In this document: positions 27,375 to 38,970 of the stretch, one piece after another | Layout: each line of letters opens with the position of its first letter | Numbering within the stretch: position 1 is the stretch's first letter | Assembly (NCBI GenBank): GCA_946965045.2 | Contig: OX337233.1 | Location: forward strand, 558,001-622,000 | DNA length: 64,000 nucleotides | Direction: 5' to 3' | DNA from: Epithemia pelagica | Taxonomy: Eukaryota > Protista > Bacillariophyta | Notes under the pieces: model-generated | Seen by the model: the letters and a program-made list of their open reading frames with translations, nothing else | Told to the model about the DNA's origin: nothing | Databases searched by the model: none | Made by a program: the position numbers and the translations under genes

Positions 27375-27689
27375 GGCATGATATCCTTTGAAGCGTCCTG
27401 TGCTGGCCATTGGGATCGCTGTGGGAGGCCAATTCCCAGAAACTATTCCTTCCAAAATGTGGCGGTGTCTCGCTCCACGATTCGAAAAGTATAAGGCGTG
27501 ACTGTTTTCTGTTCACCTCGTCCGGCGTTCTGCACAGCTCAATATGCTGTGTTCGCAGTGCCAGACGGCGCCATGCACGCCGGGCATGGCGTATGATCAC
27601 TCGCAGGTCAACGGCTGTACGCGTGCCGAGATGTTGCAGGCCATCACTGTGACGTGACGAATTGCGACCGGCACCGAACCGAGAGCGTA

Positions 27690-27710
27690 CACTGCAAGTC
27701 ATTTCTAGAC
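27690..27710 (+). repeat. Left TIR
   Basis: cactgcaagtcatttctagac; first 16 nt perfect with the right end, 19/21 overall. Confidence 0.93.
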
Positions 27711-27968
27711 TGAGTAACTATTCTGTTAACCGAATATTAATTAATCGATCCAGCCCTAACCGATTAAGGCGAACGACACTTCCCTCCATTTTTATCCAGT
27801 TACAACGACCGAACATTTCCAATTCGATTTATTGCTAACCGAATACCAAATAAACAAAATTTCAAACCGAATAATTTATAAATCGGTCGATACTAACTGC
27901 TTGAAAGTTAAGTCCGTTCACATCTAACCGTTTAATCGTCTTCGTTATATTTTTATCCTTTTGTGGTT

Positions 27969-29288
27969 TTATTTTCTCTCGTCACATCGTCGACGTTTAC
28001 CATCGTCAGAAGCATCAGCAACACTACTTTCCTTTTTATCATTTTTCTCGGCATTCTCTTTTTCCGCATCATTGTTAAGATGTAGTCGTCGCTTGAGTGG
28101 TTTTTCACTGATCGATCCACCAACAGGGATAGAACGCACTCCCGATGACGAACTCGCATGTTTTCCGAAAAGGGAATTGAGATACAACAAGTCTTCATGT
28201 TTCTCAAAACTCAGAATCCCTCCATGGCAGGACATAACAAGACTCTGACGAGATACAACCGAATTAGCCACTGTATGGATATATTGAATGCATTCATTCG
28301 GAAAATAATACCCAACCTTCAACGACACTTCTCGTTGAGTAGAAGTAGTTGATAGACCGCCCAGTTTGTTCAATTCCTTGTCCATTTTTTTTTGTAGATT
28401 GTATAATCCAATCCAAATACTACGATGTAGACATCGTCTTGGAACCACAAGATTCGATGGATGGTCATACCCAGGATGTGTATTTGGGAAACCCATAGTA
28501 ACCGTAGGTGGGAGTTCCTCGAGGCGATGTCTTGTAGGCTTCACATAAGAATTGATCGTGTTATGCCAAAATCTGACGACATACACGTTGCACATTCCTT
28601 CTGCCCATGCATTACCACTTCTCTCCAACTCACGTAGAGTAAAAACAAAAACCCGAAATAGCAACTTTACTTTGTAGTCTGGTTTTTCCCCATCAATCCA
28701 CAGAACTTCTCTTGATTCGTAAACTTCATCGTTCTTAGATCCACACCCGTTCTGTATCTTGTTGCGCGTGTGTGATGGAAGATTTGGATACCACTTCAAG
28801 CGATTACTGCGAAACAATGGAAGAAACAGCCGGATTCTGATAGTGGTTTTTTCTGAATCTGGATCATCATCTTCATCTTTCACCCGTTCCTCCAACCGCG
28901 CGATAGTTATTTCCTTCGAATCCTCGTCGTCCTCTCGCAATTGAATGGCCATAAACGAGCCAATCCGGATATTATCCATTAATGTCCAATCGAAATACGG
29001 GACGTCGTTCACATAAACGGTATTTCCATACCCTGGCGACGAAGACGAAGACGAAGACGAAGACGACGAGGACGACACAGACATATTTTTGGATTTCTGC
29101 TCACCACACAGTTTTACACCTACACATCCTTTATATATACCATGTGTGTGGTCCTCTCTCTCTATAACCCGCGTTCTCATGCTCATCCGGCGTGCATATA
29201 TCGTTAGTCTGCAATATTGTATGATATTCCAAACCACTGACATCCAATGATTGTTTTGATTTTGTCTATGTATTTTACTAACAGACAT
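27969..29288 (-). CDS. BAH (bromo-adjacent homology) domain protein, transposon cargo
   Basis: IRIGSFMAI / ITIARLEE / IRIRLFL / DEVYESREVLWID / RVFVFT..E / NVYVVRFWHN follow the order and spacing of BAH strands. True start uncertain (29288 or a downstream ATG). Confidence 0.72.
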   Translation of the reverse strand: MSVSKIHRQNQNNHWMSVVWNIIQYCRLTIYARRMSMRTRVIEREDHTHGIYKGCVGVKLCGEQKSKNMSVSSSSSSSSSSSSSPGYGNTVYVNDVPYFDWTLMDNIRIGSFMAIQLREDDEDSKEITIARLEERVKDEDDDPDSEKTTIRIRLFLPLFRSNRLKWYPNLPSHTRNKIQNGCGSKNDEVYESREVLWIDGEKPDYKVKLLFRVFVFTLRELERSGNAWAEGMCNVYVVRFWHNTINSYVKPTRHRLEELPPTVTMGFPNTHPGYDHPSNLVVPRRCLHRSIWIGLYNLQKKMDKELNKLGGLSTTSTQREVSLKVGYYFPNECIQYIHTVANSVVSRQSLVMSCHGGILSFEKHEDLLYLNSLFGKHASSSSGVRSIPVGGSISEKPLKRRLHLNNDAEKENAEKNDKKESSVADASDDGKRRRCDERK

Positions 29289-29877
29289 GCGTATGGTCTA
29301 AGTTGACTCATACGCCTGACAACACATGTCCTAAGAAACACAATAATACTTATATATCGTTTCAAACCATGGGGTTATATATATATCAATATTCAACTCT
29401 TTCAATGACCCTTATGTAATTTTACACCATACACCCATATTCCCCTATACGATAGGCCAGTTATGCAATATTTGTATAATATTCATATTCATACTCCTTC
29501 GTTTGAAACGATTTTACGTAGAGCAGTTTTCATGCTCCCACTCAAATCAAATAACACAACTTCTAGGTAGTAAGACGAATATTGTTAAATTAAATCAGTA
29601 TAACAAATATTACAAAAGAAGTCATTCACGGTTTTGAACTCATTTGGTCTTGCAACAACAATCAAAAGTAAGCCGACCCTTCTTTCCTTTCGTGCATATT
29701 TCGCCTCACTTTTTTCAAGGACCTCGTCTCGTCTCTCTCATCTCTCTCTCGTTTCCTTTTTTTCACATGCTTATTTTTAAGATCACATTCTGTATCGTTT
29801 GTTTCAAGTTATATCCTTTTCTTCTACTAAACAGTCGTTGAAGCATTCCATTCAACAGTCATACAACAGTCCATCTA

Positions 29878-31323
29878 ATGGCGGACGATTTTGCAAATAA
29901 CTGGGGTGCGTCGTATGTTCTACCCGATTTACGCCGGCAGTCAACGAAACGTAAAGCAGTTGATTCGTATATATCATCCGACAAGAGATCAGAGATCGAA
30001 CTTCGTGCGATTATCAAGAACACTACACATGGATATTTCAATTTAGAGAAACTTACTCCCAATGGATCGGACGCCAATTTGTTCGCTATTACAAGCTTAT
30101 GCAATGGGGACACTCATGGTGTCCTCATTGGCTGTGGAAGTTATGTCGCTGGAGATTTGGGTCCTTTACAACCCTGGTCTACCGCCGACTTCCGCGTCAA
30201 TGAAGGCCCATCTTACATTCATGAACCCACAAGCAATGATATCTCTGTCTCAGCACGGTCGAGGACCATCGCCCTACCCTACTGCATTGAAGGTGTCATG
30301 GGAGAACGAGGACAAATTTCCTACGAGGATTTATGTCTCCAAGGTCTTCACAAGAGATGTATTTACCAAGAAGCAATCGGCCAGCGCGTGACTGTTCTTT
30401 TCCTCGAGCTACTGTTGGCCTCGAATGGTTGCACATTGAGCAATCGATTTCTAAAAAGAGTCGGTCTGTTGTCGAAGCATCATGATTTCCATATCATCGT
30501 TGATGAAATACTCACCGGTGCTCGAATGGACACAATGCTTTTAACAATGAATGGACCAAAGGAATTTATTGACCGCGTGGCTTTCGTCACACTCGGTAAA
30601 TGGTGTAAATGCGGTGTGGTTTTGTCTGGATATCACTATGACTCACATCTACAATCGTCTAAAAACCGGATGGACCCACGTGGAGTAACAACAGGTCTCA
30701 ATTGCTCTAATCCCTTGCCTTATTTTCGCAAAGTCCAGGAACTTCTTCCAACAATTCCAGATCGACGAACAAGATGCATCTCTAAGTTTACGTCCATGAG
30801 CTCCCATGAAACCTGGGGCATTGGTCTTATCATCTTCATCCCTCGCTGTTGCCTCGGTACCAGAGCTGGAACGAAAAACAGGTTGCTACCATTACTGAAT
30901 AACACGCCGCCAGATAACATCAAGTCGATACCGGAACCAACATGGAGCAGAGCTAGTGTAAGTCGCCGCACTCTTTCTTGTGTACTAAAATGGACAAATC
31001 AAGTCTCGTTCATTTCAAGTAACTTCTCTCTGGATTCAAAGATACTGTGTCTTTATCACATGATTTGCTTTCTTGTTGAGCACCATGTACCTGGTGGTTG
31101 GATCACATCGTCTGAATTACACGAGCAAGTGACAAAGGCAAGTGACGAACATGAACAAGAAAGTCTACGATTCACAACCTCTATCCTCCGTGCTATCGAG
31201 AGATGTGGGTATCTCAGGAAACAAATGAAAACCCACCGTCGACTACATGGATGGTCCATTATATCTGACCGTCTCAACTATCCATGGCAAGTTACTCCCA
31301 TTGAACATTCCCCGAACGAATGA
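29878..31323 (+). CDS. Class-III PLP-dependent aminotransferase-fold protein with putative C-terminal winged helix, transposon cargo
   Basis: NGSDANLFAI, VLFLELLLASNG, HIIVDEILTGAR, VTLGK (putative PLP Lys at 30598-30600), TWGIGLII; tail ITSSELHEQV...ILRAIERCGYLRK...GWSI. Confidence 0.75.
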   Translation: MADDFANNWGASYVLPDLRRQSTKRKAVDSYISSDKRSEIELRAIIKNTTHGYFNLEKLTPNGSDANLFAITSLCNGDTHGVLIGCGSYVAGDLGPLQPWSTADFRVNEGPSYIHEPTSNDISVSARSRTIALPYCIEGVMGERGQISYEDLCLQGLHKRCIYQEAIGQRVTVLFLELLLASNGCTLSNRFLKRVGLLSKHHDFHIIVDEILTGARMDTMLLTMNGPKEFIDRVAFVTLGKWCKCGVVLSGYHYDSHLQSSKNRMDPRGVTTGLNCSNPLPYFRKVQELLPTIPDRRTRCISKFTSMSSHETWGIGLIIFIPRCCLGTRAGTKNRLLPLLNNTPPDNIKSIPEPTWSRASVSRRTLSCVLKWTNQVSFISSNFSLDSKILCLYHMICFLVEHHVPGGWITSSELHEQVTKASDEHEQESLRFTTSILRAIERCGYLRKQMKTHRRLHGWSIISDRLNYPWQVTPIEHSPNE

Positions 31324-31385
31324 TTCTCGCAACGTCTCCATACGAAGTATATATATCTATAGTAATATATAAAAGCCAATATAGT

Positions 31386-34300
31386 TCAACTATAGTCCAC
31401 ATTATTCGTGATAGCTTCGATGGGGACCAGTCGATATGATCCATCATTCCACCTTTCTCTCCATAGATTCCCAACGGTGTAGTATGAGTTAATAAAATTC
31501 CCAGTCGTTGACGATGTCAGTGGTATAAGGAGCAATACTTCTTGCACAAAATCCTTCTTCATCTCAGCAACAGACTGGAATAGACGTGTTTCGCTTGTCC
31601 CCAACACCGGTGCCACCCAACACATTGTTTGTGTCCATTCTCCTATTTCATCTTGGAAGCGTAATCGGCACAATTTTACCAGGCGCCTGGTATTACCAGT
31701 TTCTTCACCAATGGGTCTATATGCTATGTAAGCATTGTTATCACGGCCAAGTACACCACAAAGAATACCATTCTCGGATAAATGGTCCTCCATTTCGGAA
31801 CGGCTTTTGAAGATCCTTATCATCGAATCACTTTCCCTATTCATTCGAGACTTCTCCTTTGATGCATCTGCTTGGTTCAGCATCCACTGTAGTGTGTCGT
31901 ATTGGTATAGTTTTCGCATTGTTATGGTGGTCCAATCAGCTGTGCTCCTCTTAATGGATAACAATGGTTTGACTTGTTGAATCTTTCTCTCGCCCTCCCA
32001 CCCCCCTTCCCAGTGTAGTATTGCTGGACCCATCTCGGAATGAGCTGTAGCGCACGATAGGATACCCAAAGAATTGGACTTGGTAAAATTGGGATTTTTC
32101 TTCTGTCGATCAGACTCGAAGAGAATGAGATCTACCTCCGCCATATGATCCATATACAAGTGGATATAATCTTCCAAGTTACCGATGGTCTTGCAATTTG
32201 TCATTATCCGTCCCAAGCACATGGCCATGCTGGTTATAAAGCGGCTAAGTGAGCGCCATTCGTCCTTGTACCCTGGAGTGCGGAACCATCGACTGTCACA
32301 TATACTTGGAAGCGACATCAGAAACCTCCAAATTCTTGCACCGAGTAAATAATTCTCGGACACCCAAACTCCAGTACCCCAAGAGGACGTGGATAGTGGC
32401 TGCGCACAAAAGAACTTCGTCGCCCGCAGCGACCTGATGCCCTCCAGCACTTTGTTCACTTGCTTACCAAAAGGAGCAAGACGATTGTATTTCCCAAGCC
32501 ATTTCGACACCATCTCCAAATTACTTTTCGCGTGGCCCAAAAAGAGCATGTGCATTGGAGCGAAATGGCATTTGGCCAGTGCTCCAATCTCCTTCCAACT
32601 TGTTGGGAAGCATATATCTCCTTCGGAAGTCGTGCATTGTTGGTATATTGACTCTATCATGCGGTTTGTAAGTGCGCAAGTCTTTAAGAACGCATTGAAA
32701 TTTCCTTTCGTCCAGAATTTTTTCCTCGAACCATCGCTCTGTATTGTCTGATGGGTCACGTTGTGACATGCGAACAGAACAGCTTGTTTGAGCCAACTAA
32801 CCGTAAGCTTAACGGATCGAAGAAGGATTCTTTTGGTCGGTTTCTTTCTTGACTTCTTCCGACGTTTCTTTCGAACCTGGCCAACGACGTCATTGCTGCT
32901 ATCCACCACGGTAACAACATCATCGGTCACCTCGGAAGAAGGATCTGTCTCGCTCACTGGTATGTCCTCGATACGGTGCCACAAATCGCGGAGAATTGGG
33001 GGCTTAGGAGCATTTGGCGATTGATCATAGACCTGCGGGTAATCGGCTGGTGCTACGAAAACGAAGTTCGGGTCTTCGATTCTCCAGTCAGAGCATGACT
33101 CGCATATATCACGAGCCGTGTTATCAACTTGGAATCCACATTGCAGACGCTGGAGTCGTCTTTTCTTACACTCTGTACACGATGGTAAATGGTTTATTTG
33201 GCAAGTACCATCTACATTGGTAGCATACCCCCAAAAAGCCGAATACGAACCATTGTGGTCTCCGATACGGAATATAGTTGTCCGTTCAGGTCGATCGACA
33301 GAGATCAACAGCTTCCCCACCATAACATGGATAACTTTTTTCAATCCTCCATGATATAGTCGGAGACCTGTCGACGATAATGTATCCAATTCTTCGATCA
33401 TTATCTCTTCAATCTTGTTGTGGTCTTCTCCTTTACTCGATAGACCAATGTAGTAAGTTGTTGATCCACGCACATTCGTTGATTGATGAGGAGGACATAG
33501 TGTATACGTATTACACCAAACTTGATTCCGCGATGATTTCGTGTTGTTTGGATCGAAATCATCGCGCCATTCGCGAAGCCATAGATACAATGTAAATTGA
33601 TCTGAACCGTTACCACTTCTTTTTTGTTCTTCTTTCATGGAGAACAACAGTGACTTGGCACATTGTGTGCTAGAAACACTCGGAACAGCGTTGTCTGGAG
33701 CAATTTGCAATTTTGCCATGAAATCAAAATCATCGTACTCGGTAGCTTTACCTATCTCGTTGGCCAATAAATCGTACAGAGAAACATATGAGTGACTGCC
33801 ATCCGGCGTCGTTTTGGGAATTGGGTGTGGCAGATTGGGAAGAATCGCATTCTTTCCTGTTAAAAAGAACCGATCAAAATCTTCATTTGTTGATGGAAGT
33901 CTGATGTTTTGGAAAATGGATAACTGGCTATGGCCACTATTTCCTGCAGTGGTCAAAATTTCAGCAAATATCTTCTTCTGTTGTTCTGTTAGTTGTACCA
34001 ACAGAGACGAAATCTTTAGACAAAATATTGATTCCTCTGTAGAAACTTGTGCGGAACTCAGACCAAAAGCATTGGCAGTCAACCAGCGTATACCACTGCC
34101 TTTCTCTTTTGCTTCTTGAATGAGATACTTTGGCGTAGTCGATTTTCGGTCAAACCCCATTTGGAATAGTTCCATTTCAGTCGGAATTTGGTCTGTTGCA
34201 TCCAGTATCGGTTGTGGAGATGAAATTTGACTCATTTGGTCGGAATCAAAACAGTCTAAGCCATTTTGGTCATCAACAGGCGGTGAAGATTGATGAATAG

Positions 34301-34601
34301 ACTCTTGCTCCACCTTCTTTTGATGGAATGACGTCTGTGAGTGTCGTTGGACGTATTTCCACTGGGCAATGTACCCCGAAGACTTCCCAGTCCTCTCTTG
34401 ACTTTGGATACAAAGTCGACAACAAAAGAAATTGGTCGACGAAACCCGGCAATTGGCAATGGAATTGGAACAAGAACCTTCATAAAGATATGTCTCCATA
34501 CCGGGAGGAGATGTTTTGACTGGGAGACAGACAACTTCCATGGAGCATTCCCTACAAAGAACGGTGATCGATCGGCTTTCATTGGGTTGGTCATTACTCA
34601 T
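31386..34601 (-). CDS. EnSpm/CACTA-type (Transposase_21/Tnp2-like) DDE transposase, about 1071 aa
   Basis: WRDDFDP...QVW, ELDTLSSTGLRLY, LLISVDRPE, HNG, PMHMLFLG, GPAILHWEGGWEGERK; N-terminal CxxC...H...H zinc-finger-like segment. First ATG 34601 (ORF track starts at TTG 34664). Confidence 0.85.
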   Translation of the reverse strand: MSNDQPNESRSITVLCRECSMEVVCLPVKTSPPGMETYLYEGSCSNSIANCRVSSTNFFCCRLCIQSQERTGKSSGYIAQWKYVQRHSQTSFHQKKVEQESIHQSSPPVDDQNGLDCFDSDQMSQISSPQPILDATDQIPTEMELFQMGFDRKSTTPKYLIQEAKEKGSGIRWLTANAFGLSSAQVSTEESIFCLKISSLLVQLTEQQKKIFAEILTTAGNSGHSQLSIFQNIRLPSTNEDFDRFFLTGKNAILPNLPHPIPKTTPDGSHSYVSLYDLLANEIGKATEYDDFDFMAKLQIAPDNAVPSVSSTQCAKSLLFSMKEEQKRSGNGSDQFTLYLWLREWRDDFDPNNTKSSRNQVWCNTYTLCPPHQSTNVRGSTTYYIGLSSKGEDHNKIEEIMIEELDTLSSTGLRLYHGGLKKVIHVMVGKLLISVDRPERTTIFRIGDHNGSYSAFWGYATNVDGTCQINHLPSCTECKKRRLQRLQCGFQVDNTARDICESCSDWRIEDPNFVFVAPADYPQVYDQSPNAPKPPILRDLWHRIEDIPVSETDPSSEVTDDVVTVVDSSNDVVGQVRKKRRKKSRKKPTKRILLRSVKLTVSWLKQAVLFACHNVTHQTIQSDGSRKKFWTKGNFNAFLKTCALTNRMIESIYQQCTTSEGDICFPTSWKEIGALAKCHFAPMHMLFLGHAKSNLEMVSKWLGKYNRLAPFGKQVNKVLEGIRSLRATKFFCAQPLSTSSWGTGVWVSENYLLGARIWRFLMSLPSICDSRWFRTPGYKDEWRSLSRFITSMAMCLGRIMTNCKTIGNLEDYIHLYMDHMAEVDLILFESDRQKKNPNFTKSNSLGILSCATAHSEMGPAILHWEGGWEGERKIQQVKPLLSIKRSTADWTTITMRKLYQYDTLQWMLNQADASKEKSRMNRESDSMIRIFKSRSEMEDHLSENGILCGVLGRDNNAYIAYRPIGEETGNTRRLVKLCRLRFQDEIGEWTQTMCWVAPVLGTSETRLFQSVAEMKKDFVQEVLLLIPLTSSTTGNFINSYYTVGNLWRERWNDGSYRLVPIEAITNNVDYS

Positions 34602-35201
34602 TGCACTATAGCGATGGAACAGGGTGGGGACAAAGGAAATCCTGCAATGGCGAATCACTGTCAATGAATGTACTTCTGAGATCTTTTGGATGTCTCGTCG
34701 TTCATTGTCGGTATTATGAGTTTAATATCTCGGAACCACAATCCCCCACACGACGCGATGACTCTCATCCCCCAAAACGATATGTGACATGATTGATACT
34801 TATTACTTTCATCTCACGGTATCCAAAATCATGTCTGATAGGTACTCAAAATTTGAAAATACATAGGCATATGGCTTAGTTCATTAACAGACGGTACTCT
34901 GATTCAGGATACGGTAATCGACCAATTAACTAAAGTGACATACTTTAGTCTCGTGAAACAATGGTACTTAGACAGCCAAGTACCGTTCGTGACTCTGAGA
35001 AACCGTTGCTCGTTCTTTGTTTCGAATGAAAATCAAACACGATGGTATGTGGTTCTCGTCCTTTTTTCTGTGCGGCATGTGTGATGTTCTTGATTCTTTG
35101 GCAACACCCTTTTTTCAACTTCGTCTCATTGCCATGGACGTATCGCTTTGATTCGAAATATACCATCCGCATTACAAAAGCTAGGTTTGCCAATTGATAG
35201 T

Positions 35202-38075
35202 ATGGTAAGTTGGATGCATATCCTTAGGTTATAGTGGTATTGTCGAAAGACTCAACGAATGTTTCTGTATTTTCTGTGCAGTCTCTTATTTCTCATATCA
35301 ATGGAGGTGTGTCATCTCTTAATCGTCAGACAGAGGCAACGAGTATTCCATTGAATAACGCCATACCACAAGACAGTACCGGCAATCAACTTGGTAATCA
35401 AGAAGCAAGACAAACTGAACCTAATCCTATTCGCAATATGGAGACTCCGAATGTCCAAGATTCACACACGTCGACAGGATCAACTTCCCCACGTGTATTG
35501 TTGGAATATCCAAGAAATTTTTTCCATCAGGAGACAGGTGTGGGTCCATCAACTTCGGAAGAAGCAGCACTGTTGTGGATATACAGGAAAGGAAGGCGAA
35601 CTGACGGATTGGCCGATACTGAACCTCCAGATGGAAACTTAATGCTGCAAGAAATAAAAGAAATCAGAGACAGTCTCCGTGCGCATATACAGAGAACTTA
35701 TGAAAATGGTCTTCGTGATCGTGCAAAAGAGTTGGATATCCAGATGCCCGGAAAAGCAGCTTTTCCGGTGCACTTGTCTGATTTCCGCAAAATTCTAAAT
35801 GAACTTCCATGTACTTTGGCTAATCAACGAATGGTTTTTGAGTTGGTACTGCAGTTTCACAAGGATCGACATTGGTTGGCCCATGCTATTGATCGGTGGT
35901 TTGACAAAGAAGGAATGACATTGGCCCCGCTGCATAAGCCAAAGTTTGTGAACGGAAAAAGAACCCGCATCTGCCCAACGGATAGAGGTGGCTTCTCGGC
36001 GGTTGCAAGATCTGCAAAATCTGCCATTGTTGGAGGGCTTATGGCTCCAATGTTGCGTAATGCTGGATGGAGTGTTTCCTTGACGAAAAATCAAGGAAAG
36101 AAGCACAATTATGAGACAAAGGTACAATACAACCAGTCGCAGTCGTTCTACGTGGTCACCCAAGAAAAAAAGGTACGTCGTCAGAATTGGGATTCTATAC
36201 GTTATTCCAAGAATGCTATGCCTAATTTGTTGTATGTCTGTCAAGGAAACAAACACGGACTCGAATGTAATCGAAGTCGATAGTGCTACGCCCGATTTTG
36301 AACGGGCCAGTCAAATTTTTACGGAAACGATTGGAGTACGAATTGACGAAGCGTGCGTTAGAAAGTTGTGGGCGAGTTGCTTTGTCCCGAAGCAACTGAA
36401 TGCTATCAAAGTAAATATGACGGGCAAAGAGTTAGTCGTTCAACGTAATCCGGCCGAAATATCGGATCTTACTGAAAAAGGAAACGAAGAATCAGGGGAT
36501 GTATCCCGCATTCCAGTACGGCATCCAATTCAAGATGATCGAGCAACGAGGGTAATCAGGAGTGAGAATGTCAATAAGGAAACACAACTTATTGAAATGG
36601 CTCGTAAAAATTCGACGCCAGAGGAGATAAGTCCTTCGAATGGCGGGGCGATTTCAACAAACGCAGCGATTTCAACAAACGCATCAGTTCCATTGGGTGT
36701 GGCTGCCTGTGAGATAGAGGAAAATCACAATGAGGAGATAGCCGAGCACGAGTCAATTGATTCAGAGAGTATAGATGTGTCACAACCTTTGTTCGAAGAC
36801 GTAGCAAATGCAATCAACAGAGATAACACAGTTGCCATGCAGAAGATGTCGGAAACACGTAAGGACTTTGAGCAAGAATCAGATGATTCGATTGTTATGG
36901 CAATGGGAACGACAGATGGTCATGCCGGTAAAGACAGAGAGAGGAATTCTGATACACAAGATAATACAAATCTTTCGAAGACAGCTCGATCTAATGGTAA
37001 AAATGTACAAGATCAAGAATCGTTGGTTACGCAGGTACAGGAGAGCGGGGATTGTGCTCTAACGACACAAAACAGAAACAGCCAGGGGCAAACAACACTC
37101 CTTTCGAAAGAAGTACAGGAGAGCGGGGGTTGTGCTCTAACGACACAAAACAGAAACAGCCAGGGGCAAACAACACTCCTTTCGAAAGAGAGTGCCCATA
37201 GACAGGATTCACTGGATACGCAGAAGAATGAGAGCAGTGACGTTGCTCTACGGAATAAAAAGGAAAAAAATCAGGTACTGGCCATGCTCGTGGATGGGCA
37301 ATCTCAGTTAGATGAAAGATTGAACACTGTTCTTCCGTTGGAACATGAAAATGTCCAGGAACAAACAAGAACCGAGAATACTCGCGACTCGTCGAAAGGT
37401 GCAAGAGAGGTAGACGTGGGCAAGGTGCGTATATTGTGACAAGGTTTTCTTTGTTTGTGAACAATCGTGGTGAACTGATCTTTGGTGTGTTTGGTAGCAG
37501 GGCAAAAGTTCCCCTCCAAAAAAGAGAAAGGTACGGTTGTATTTTTGTCTTTGTTGAGAGAATGAATCAGTTCTCTCATTATAGTTTCTTCTTTGTGTGA
37601 AAACTTCTGAGTACAGGGTACGGATTGTGAACAGAGAAAACGACAGTCCACTAAACGACCCTCCCCACCGAAACGAGTCTCCCCACGGAAACAAGCCAAG
37701 AAGCATCAGTGTGCAGGAAGTCCGAAAGAGGGAGAGCAATGTGTACAATGTCCAAAAGAAAATCATGATCTGGGCCTTCTGATTCGGCAAGACACGTCGA
37801 CATATTTCAAAGAAGACTATTACAATCGAAATACAAATTGGCCGTCGACATGTGTAAAATGTAACCAAAGGTTCGGAGGCCTTGGTAAAAAGGTAAATCA
37901 AACAAATCCGGTAATGGCTTGCAAAAACGCATGTGTGACGGGTCATCCATGTAAACATGCATATTGTAACGAATGTTACGTGAATTTGATGAGAGAGAAA
38001 ATGAAACAAGACGACATGGAAGCAGGAGCAGGTACGAGATCAATGAGGACACGTAATAAATCAAGAGTGGTATGA
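35202..38075 (+). CDS. Multi-exon transposon gene ending in a PHD/ADD-like Cys/His zinc finger
   Basis: Phase-0 GT-AG introns 36173-36245, 37425-37500 and 37531-37616 join the frames; last exon 37617-38075 encodes CVQC...H...CVKC...CKNAC...HPCKHAYCNEC. The 5' end is uncertain (ATG 35202 plus intron 35205-35281, or ATG 35438). Confidence 0.72.
37035..37190 (+). repeat. 78-bp (26-aa) in-frame tandem duplication
   Basis: VQESG(D/G)CALTTQNRNSQGQTTLLSKE x2, starting at 37035 and 37113. Confidence 0.9.
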
Positions 38076-38586
38076 GGAAAAAGGTGTGGCGTGATGGTAT
38101 AAAGAGATATATGAGAGTTGGTACTACCAAATATAAATTTGTAATAGTTCTTTCGTCAACCTCTCCTCTTTGTGGTGTGTCTGTCTCTATGTATAAATAT
38201 ATAGATCTCGTCTCTCTCTCCATCTCTCATGTCCCGCGACGATCCATATCACACAAAAACGATGTGGTAACTGAATAGTTTAACAGAATAAAGAGTTCAA
38301 TATAATCGGTTGATTGCTTCGATTAATATTAACCGGTTAGATGATGCCTCTGATGACTGACTAATAATGAGAGGTGACAGATTAAATATCTTATCGACTG
38401 AATAGCTTGAGCAGTTAGGCGTTCCGGGTTAACTGATTATATTTTACTTACCGATTATTAACTGGATTGGTGATTTTCTGTCAGAATAAGAGAATATGGT
38501 TAACCGAATGAGGTTTGGGGGGCTGGTTTTTATAAAGAGTTTTAAACTGTCACTATTGACTGTATAAGTTAAACTGTTGGTAAACG

Positions 38587-38607
38587 GTTTGGAAATGACT
38601 TGCAGTG
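38587..38607 (-). repeat. Right TIR
   Basis: gtttggaaatgacttgcagtg, reverse complement of the left end. Confidence 0.93.
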
Positions 38608-38970
38608 TAACCGAAGAGACACGGTGCGAGGATCAAAAGCGTCGGACGATGAACATGTGGGATCCCAAACGTTGGTGGATACATGAAACACACTGTGTCT
38701 CAACGAAGCTCAACGGTTCGTGGAGTTACTGCGTAGGCGATTGTGAATGAGTGCTTCACGTCAAAAGTTGACGAGATGGCTAGGTAGCAATGTTGCGTTC
38801 TTCGAATGTGGGATCCAAAAAATGTAGGTGGATATTTGACACGGTTCGTGGAGACACTACGCCGGAATGAGAGCTTTGCATCAAAAGCTGATATGCCAAA
38901 GCAATGTTTCACATCACAGCAGATCATTTTCTTCGACACACTTTCTTTTGTTTCCGATCATCAAAGGAAG

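Follow-up and report, generated by a model that had tools for sequence, protein, structure and literature searches.

What would a protein with the predicted fold of a chromatin reader do for a DNA transposon? The question is raised by a minus-strand gene in the window (the whole 64-kb stretch of DNA analysed here), for which a preliminary description had proposed a stand-alone BAH domain encoded by a DNA transposon. The answer that we favour, and that seems to us reasonably probable, is that the gene encodes a core accessory protein of about 371 aa of a Plavaka/EnSpm-type transposon, acting as a BAH-fold cofactor that couples transposition to chromatin.

The gene and its reading frame

The six motifs on which the BAH assignment had been based (IGSFMAI, IARLEE, IRIRLF, EVYESREVLWID, VFVFT..E and VYVVRFWHN) are real, and all of them lie in one intact minus-strand ORF of 439 aa at 27969-29288. 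The gene and the parts of its predicted product are as follows:

27969-29084, minus strand: BAH-like accessory gene, 371 codons plus stop, in a frame open to 29288
28515-29009, minus strand: predicted divergent BAH-fold domain, residues 26-190 (AF2 model, pLDDT mostly >90)
28170-28430, minus strand: predicted second compact alpha/beta domain, residues ~219-305 (secondary structure and pLDDT of the AF2 model)
27972-28157, minus strand: predicted disordered Lys/Arg/Glu-rich tail, residues 310-371 (pLDDT < 50)

Five paralogues can be aligned with the ORF from 'YxxTVYVNxVPYFDW' onwards and have nothing in common with its first 68 codons, so the start is likely the Met at 29084 (371 aa), from which residues are numbered here. 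Directly after the proposed start, about 15 successive codons specify serine (29035-29081, minus strand); this stretch, a repeat rich in GAC/GAA when read on the plus strand, is missing in the paralogues. At base 28654, the window has C and all three runs X1-X3 (DNA contigs, from one study) have G, which changes Arg144 to Pro; proline is the family consensus at residue 144 (LLFPxFVF in the paralogues), and the C in the window is due to a variant or to an error in the assembly.

The gene lies in a 10.9-kb cut-and-paste transposon

A 10,918-bp element contains the BAH-like gene as its last gene and has the following further features:

27690-38607: cut-and-paste transposon, 10,918 bp, with ends CACTGCAAGTCATTTC / GAAATGACTTGCAGTG
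27727-27845: left subterminal repeats TAACYGRWTA, 4 copies (motif count in the window)
29878-31323, plus strand: aminotransferase-like accessory gene, divergent from the BAH-like gene
31386-34664, minus strand: transposase, 1092 aa, Plavaka/EnSpm-like by language-model features, syntenic in copies L001, L003, L004 and L011
38268-38439: right subterminal repeats TAACYGRWTA (motif count in the window)

A TA target duplication flanks the element on both sides (27688-27689 and 38608-38609), and three other copies with the same ends have perfect 2-bp target site duplications (TSDs), namely TA in L003, AC in L004 and TT in L001. The ends CACTGCAAG...CTTGCAGTG, with CACTG termini, and the 2-bp TSDs (TA, TA, AC, TT) are thus found in 4/4 copies. 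All eight occurrences of TAACYGRWTA in the 64-kb window fall within the two subterminal regions, with an expected count of 0.4. The putative assignment of the transposase to Plavaka comes from language-model features: Plavaka (PF18759) clusters scored 0.96 with 203 shared features, Transposase_21 scored 0.93, and Plavaka made up 16 of the 30 best language-model matches; a Pfam search of the 1092-aa protein gave no match, the Plavaka model included. CACT(A/G) termini, a TSD of 2-3 bp and subterminal repeats, by which EnSpm/CACTA elements are recognized, are all present in the 10.9-kb element; this is consistent with a Plavaka-lineage member of the EnSpm/CACTA superfamily.

In contigs of runs X1-X3, position 27689 is followed immediately by 38610 with a single TA, and the filled junction is found in these contigs as well; since empty-site and filled alleles are both present, the 10.9-kb insertion is polymorphic or hemizygous. 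RNA runs were also sought, and none turned up. The terminal inverted repeats (TIRs), the 2-bp TSDs in 4/4 copies, the subterminal repeats, the Plavaka-like features of the transposase and the empty-site allele together bear out the proposal that the protein is encoded by a DNA transposon.

The gene order of transposase, aminotransferase-like gene and BAH-like gene is repeated in L001, L003 and L004. The aminotransferase-like gene is present in 5/6 related copies and missing from L011 (5957-10972), in which the transposase frame is in pieces and the BAH-like ORF is intact. In L005, the aminotransferase-like and BAH-like genes are kept beside a Copia insertion; a Copia-type (RVT_2) retroelement at L005:1228-9172 occupies the expected place of the transposase. 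Six intact, diverged copies of the BAH-like gene have saturated synonymous sites (pS 0.70-0.83, pN 0.22-0.33), with dN/dS of 0.12-0.17 in the pairs for which it could be calculated, and the gene is under strong purifying selection in these six copies. The same pS and pN values, together with 39 relatives (see below), argue that the ORF is a real gene and no chance ORF.

Relatives and sequence searches

A word-index search retrieved only five paralogues, every one from assembly ERZ21939226, and a second word-index search with a profile added only three further proteins; 39 relatives were collected by an exhaustive profile search. A scan of prokaryotic genome contigs found none. Many of the 39 relatives are long forms of 500-590 aa with extra C-terminal domains that are absent from the window copy; these domains were also looked for elsewhere in the 10.9-kb element and are not encoded there.

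Sequence profiles did not place the window protein in the BAH family (PF01426): the Pfam search returned 0 matches at E<=10, for the close paralogues likewise. When Pfam was run on 33 full-length relatives and 36 isolated domains, the outcome was a single sub-threshold BAH match and nothing else. This match (17.6 bits, E 0.0016-0.0036, below the PF01426 gathering score of 30.8 bits) belongs to P0029, the only one of 36 relatives to hit the profile, a 198-aa metagenomic fragment that itself matched the family profile at E 1.4e-13. It covers profile positions 2-118 of 121 and corresponds exactly to the stretch first called BAH. The PDB was also searched by sequence, using the single protein, the profiles A2, A3 and A5, and the relative P0029 as queries, with 0 BAH matches. 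By language-model features, every neighbour of the window protein is a BAH cluster (score 0.86), which we treat as a lead only.

Predicted structure of the protein

AlphaFold with a 6-sequence alignment gave an unusable model (pLDDT 42.6); with a 45-sequence alignment, pLDDT rose to 80.6 and pTM was 0.77, with 217 residues at >=90. The model consists of an all-beta domain (26-190), a compact alpha/beta domain (~219-305) and a tail that is disordered from residue 310. In a Foldseek search of the PDB, the best 50 matches are BAH domains or BAH-containing proteins, with E down to 4e-5, and include PBRM1 BAH1, SHL, EBS, DIM2, Rsc2, BAHCC1, AIPP3, DNMT1, ORC1, Sir3 and MTA1. The top VIA-align matches are also all BAH, and the alignment to EBS has Z 9.9 and an rmsd of 3.4 A over 124 residues within the model range 26-190. 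When 48,161 representative PDB chains were scanned independently of Foldseek, BAH domains took the first 19 places (Z 9.6-5.8); the first non-BAH chain came next at Z 4.3, and Tudor, PWWP and Spindlin barrels reached Z 3.6-4.0. An atlas shape search placed BAH clusters in its top two rows, with a TM-score of 0.62 to a 153-aa BAH cluster; TM-scores to BAH structures are moderate overall, about 0.45-0.62. The predicted structure has the distorted beta-barrel core of BAH and covers the whole domain. At the level of prediction, it is established that residues 26-190 adopt a divergent BAH fold, in which a conserved loop peculiar to this family (residues ~90-118) separates strands beta3 and beta4.

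The span 28550-28980, first noted as BAH, encodes residues 36-179 and lies within the modelled domain. The claim that its strand pattern matches BAH end to end holds for the predicted structure, for which all best matches in Foldseek, VIA-align and the Foldseek-independent search are BAH, but not for the Pfam and PDB sequence tools, with their 0 BAH matches.

The second region and charged tail that had been described downstream reappear in the model as a folded part at ~219-305 and a disordered, charged part at 310-371. The structural matches of the second domain in the 48,161-chain scan (WhiA LAGLIDADG, Crp wHTH, ArgR-C) are at noise level, Z <= 4.3. The description of the BAH domain as stand-alone is only partly accurate: no further known domain was recognized, yet the BAH fold is followed by another compact domain. 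The tail contains the basic clusters KRR and KRRR and, at 28053-28061 (minus strand), a KEN tripeptide, which is kept in 5/6 close paralogues although the disordered tail is otherwise variable; K342 and E343 are invariant among the close paralogues. This KEN could be a degron-type motif.

The methyl-lysine-reading BAH domains (ORC1, EBS/SHL, BAHCC1, AIPP3, TNRC18) hold the ligand in an aromatic cage made of a Tyr in beta2 and a Trp and a Tyr in beta3. In the sequence register, the beta2 segment 'TIARLEE' of the window protein has a family-conserved Thr (T60) at what we take to be the position of the cage Tyr, and the beta3 segment 'IRIRLFLPLF' has no Trp. With Thr in place of Tyr and no beta3 Trp, a canonical methyl-lysine cage is doubtful, and it does not look conserved in this family. 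Other aromatic residues are conserved (F/Y87, F91 and W160) and, judging from the alignment, could form another pocket. To our knowledge, PBRM1 BAH1, Rsc2, MTA1 and DIM2, which are among the best structural matches, are not methyl-lysine readers.

Long-form relatives in a two-gene element

At five loci (L002, L006, L007, L008 and L012), long-form relatives are arranged tail-to-tail with a large protein of 1,017-1,179 aa. The large proteins of these two-gene elements are 34-61% identical to one another. The boundaries of one such element could be defined:

L006:9667-15760, L010:9667-15824 and L009:9667-end: two-gene TIR element, 6.1 kb, with a perfect 18-bp TIR, CAATACCAACACCCCTGG

The L006, L009 and L010 copies are ~99% identical over 6.1 kb, and there are at least three such copies. 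The element contains just two genes, so that a long-form member of the BAH-like family, homologous to the window protein, is the only partner of the large protein. No clear target duplication was found at the 6.1-kb element: in the two copies that are complete, the flanks agree by no more than one base per side.

Homology between the large two-gene protein and the window transposase was sought with BLASTP and hhalign, and neither detected any. A C-terminal 'HW...GWEGE' motif occurs in both the window transposase (residues 882-892; 31998-32030, minus strand) and the L002 protein (1128-1145). A profile search against PDB sequences returned no RAG1 or Transib match for the large two-gene protein.

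A maximum-likelihood tree of 29 members of the family, rooted by metagenomic long-form sequences, unites the six genes of the 10.9-kb element type in a single clade (support 100/99). The sister of this clade is P0007/P0008, with P0009 and P0006 branching off successively deeper; all of these come from two-gene elements, and the metagenomic long forms fall outside the clade and its two-gene relatives. With this root, and since the long architecture occurs on both sides, the most parsimonious scenario is that the gene was captured once and then lost C-terminal domains; in this scenario, the ancestral long form had further C-terminal domains without counterpart in the window copy. The tree thus suggests a single capture of the BAH-like gene by a Plavaka-like element; the direction of transfer depends on the root, since a root on the stem of the 10.9-kb clade would make the two groups sisters.

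Possible role in transposition

That this partner has been kept by two large transposon proteins unrelated to each other speaks for a portable module with a role in transposition itself. The roles of BAH domains elsewhere, combined with this shared partnership, lead us to hypothesize a chromatin cofactor. The protein may enter the nucleus, as the basic clusters of its tail resemble a nuclear localisation signal; its BAH fold, by analogy with other BAH domains, would bind nucleosomes or a histone tail, and the cofactor would thereby link the element or its transposition machinery to chromatin, for instance during target choice or the assembly of the transpososome on chromatin.

A bolder proposal, which we put forward tentatively, is that of a portable chromatin-targeting cofactor able to work with unrelated transposases, which originated as an obligatory partner in a two-gene element (a RAG2 analogue, if the large protein is RAG1-like) and was captured once by a Plavaka/EnSpm element; with a non-canonical pocket it would recognize a specific nucleosome state and direct insertion.

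Alternatively, the protein may bind the element ends or recruit the transposase, comparable to Spm TnpA or the Harbinger Myb-like protein, with the BAH fold as a scaffold for protein or DNA contacts and no chromatin reading. That the two-gene element contains no other partner gene, and that the canonical cage residues do not appear conserved, would suit this role. The subterminal TAACYGRWTA repeats of the 10.9-kb element likewise need a binding protein, but the neighbouring aminotransferase-like gene is another candidate for that task; the second domain weakly resembles the DNA-binding WhiA LAGLIDADG and Crp wHTH (Z 3.5-4.1), but such matches are at noise level. We know of no BAH domain that is a sequence-specific DNA binder, which counts against this reading, and on balance we judge it unlikely.

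The protein may instead act as an anti-silencing factor that, in a VANC-like manner, occupies repressive chromatin on the element and guards it against heterochromatin or DNA methylation, independently of the transposition chemistry. Precedents have been reported: Plavaka and other transposons carry chromatin-modifying accessory genes, and VANDAL encodes an anti-silencer (10.1101/2025.02.11.637652, PMC12730594). Moreover, the BAH domains of EBS, SHL, AIPP3 and BAHCC1 bind H3K27me3, according to the titles of their PDB entries; however, the cage is not evidently conserved here, no catalytic or effector domain is attached, and the status of only partner in the two-gene element is better explained by a core role in transposition, which makes an anti-silencing factor quite improbable.

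That the gene is a captured host fragment without function, or that a generic beta-barrel was over-called as BAH, would agree with the empty Pfam and PDB sequence searches and the moderate TM-scores (about 0.45-0.62), but is very improbable and largely refuted by dN/dS (<= 0.17, in six copies that stayed intact despite saturated synonymous divergence) and by the 48,161-chain scan, with its clean gap between BAH (Z >= 5.8) and the rest (<= 4.3), the gene also being kept where the transposase is broken (L011).

Comparison with known systems

The closest structural counterparts of the favoured chromatin-coupling cofactor are the BAH domains themselves (PF01426; EBS/SHL, ORC1, PBRM1 BAH1, Rsc2, DNMT1, DIM2, Sir3), with which the window protein shares the predicted fold over ~125-140 residues (Z 8-9.9), and one relative (P0029) reproduces the profile boundaries end to end. 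An 'E-[LV]-Y-x-S' strand resembles the 'ELFxS' motif of BAH alignments. Unlike those domains, the window protein remains under every sequence threshold, has a conserved loop of ~30 residues (HP..P.H....I..G.GS.N) in place of the 'RPEE' region and, in the sequence register, carries Thr for the cage Tyr and lacks the cage Trp; its gene is transposon-borne and does not encode a host chromatin factor.

Plavaka/EnSpm elements with accessory cassettes (red-algal PAG1-3, fungal TET/JBP) resemble the 10.9-kb element in their CACTG termini, short TSD and subterminal repeats and, by language-model features, in the kind of transposase. Their chromatin-related accessory genes are reported to move between transposon families (10.1101/2025.02.11.637652; PMC12730594), and the Plavaka accessory genes reported so far are SET/N6-MTase and ParB-2OG oxygenase (10.1101/2025.02.11.637652) and TET/JBP (PMC12730594). 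These products are enzymes or ParB-like (SET, N6-MTase, 2OG oxygenase, TET/JBP), in contrast to the BAH-fold protein of the window; a BAH-fold accessory gene is not named in the accessible part of the red-algal Plavaka study (10.1101/2025.02.11.637652), and a search for the term 'BAH' returned neither this source nor PMC12730594.

Capture of reader domains by transposable elements has mainly involved Chromo and PHD domains (10.1101/2021.11.30.470311). The chromodomains of chromoviruses and the PHD/Chromo fusions likewise place a histone-reader fold in a mobile element, and the tethering or targeting role proposed for them is the same (10.1101/2021.11.30.470311). They are mostly fused to the transposase or integrase, whereas the BAH fold here is encoded by a separate gene, whose family is common to two unrelated transposon types. 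Transposons are known to take up chromatin readers (chromo, PHD) and chromatin enzymes; no description of a DNA-transposon accessory gene with a BAH fold was found in the literature searched. Within one genome, two unrelated types of transposon use the same helper family, and the helper is under strong selection in an element whose insertion is still polymorphic or hemizygous, which makes it a tractable case for target choice via chromatin or for escape from silencing.

The two-gene element also invites comparison with RAG1-RAG2 (ProtoRAG layout), in that the long forms likewise stand tail-to-tail with a large protein in a two-gene TIR element. RAG2 combines a Kelch propeller with a PHD finger; RAG2 and the BAH-like partner both carry a module of chromatin-reader type. 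The window protein differs in that it is unrelated to RAG2 and that the window copy travels with a Plavaka-like transposase; if the large partner in the two-gene element has a RAG1 fold, the pair would offer a natural counterpart to RAG1 and RAG2.
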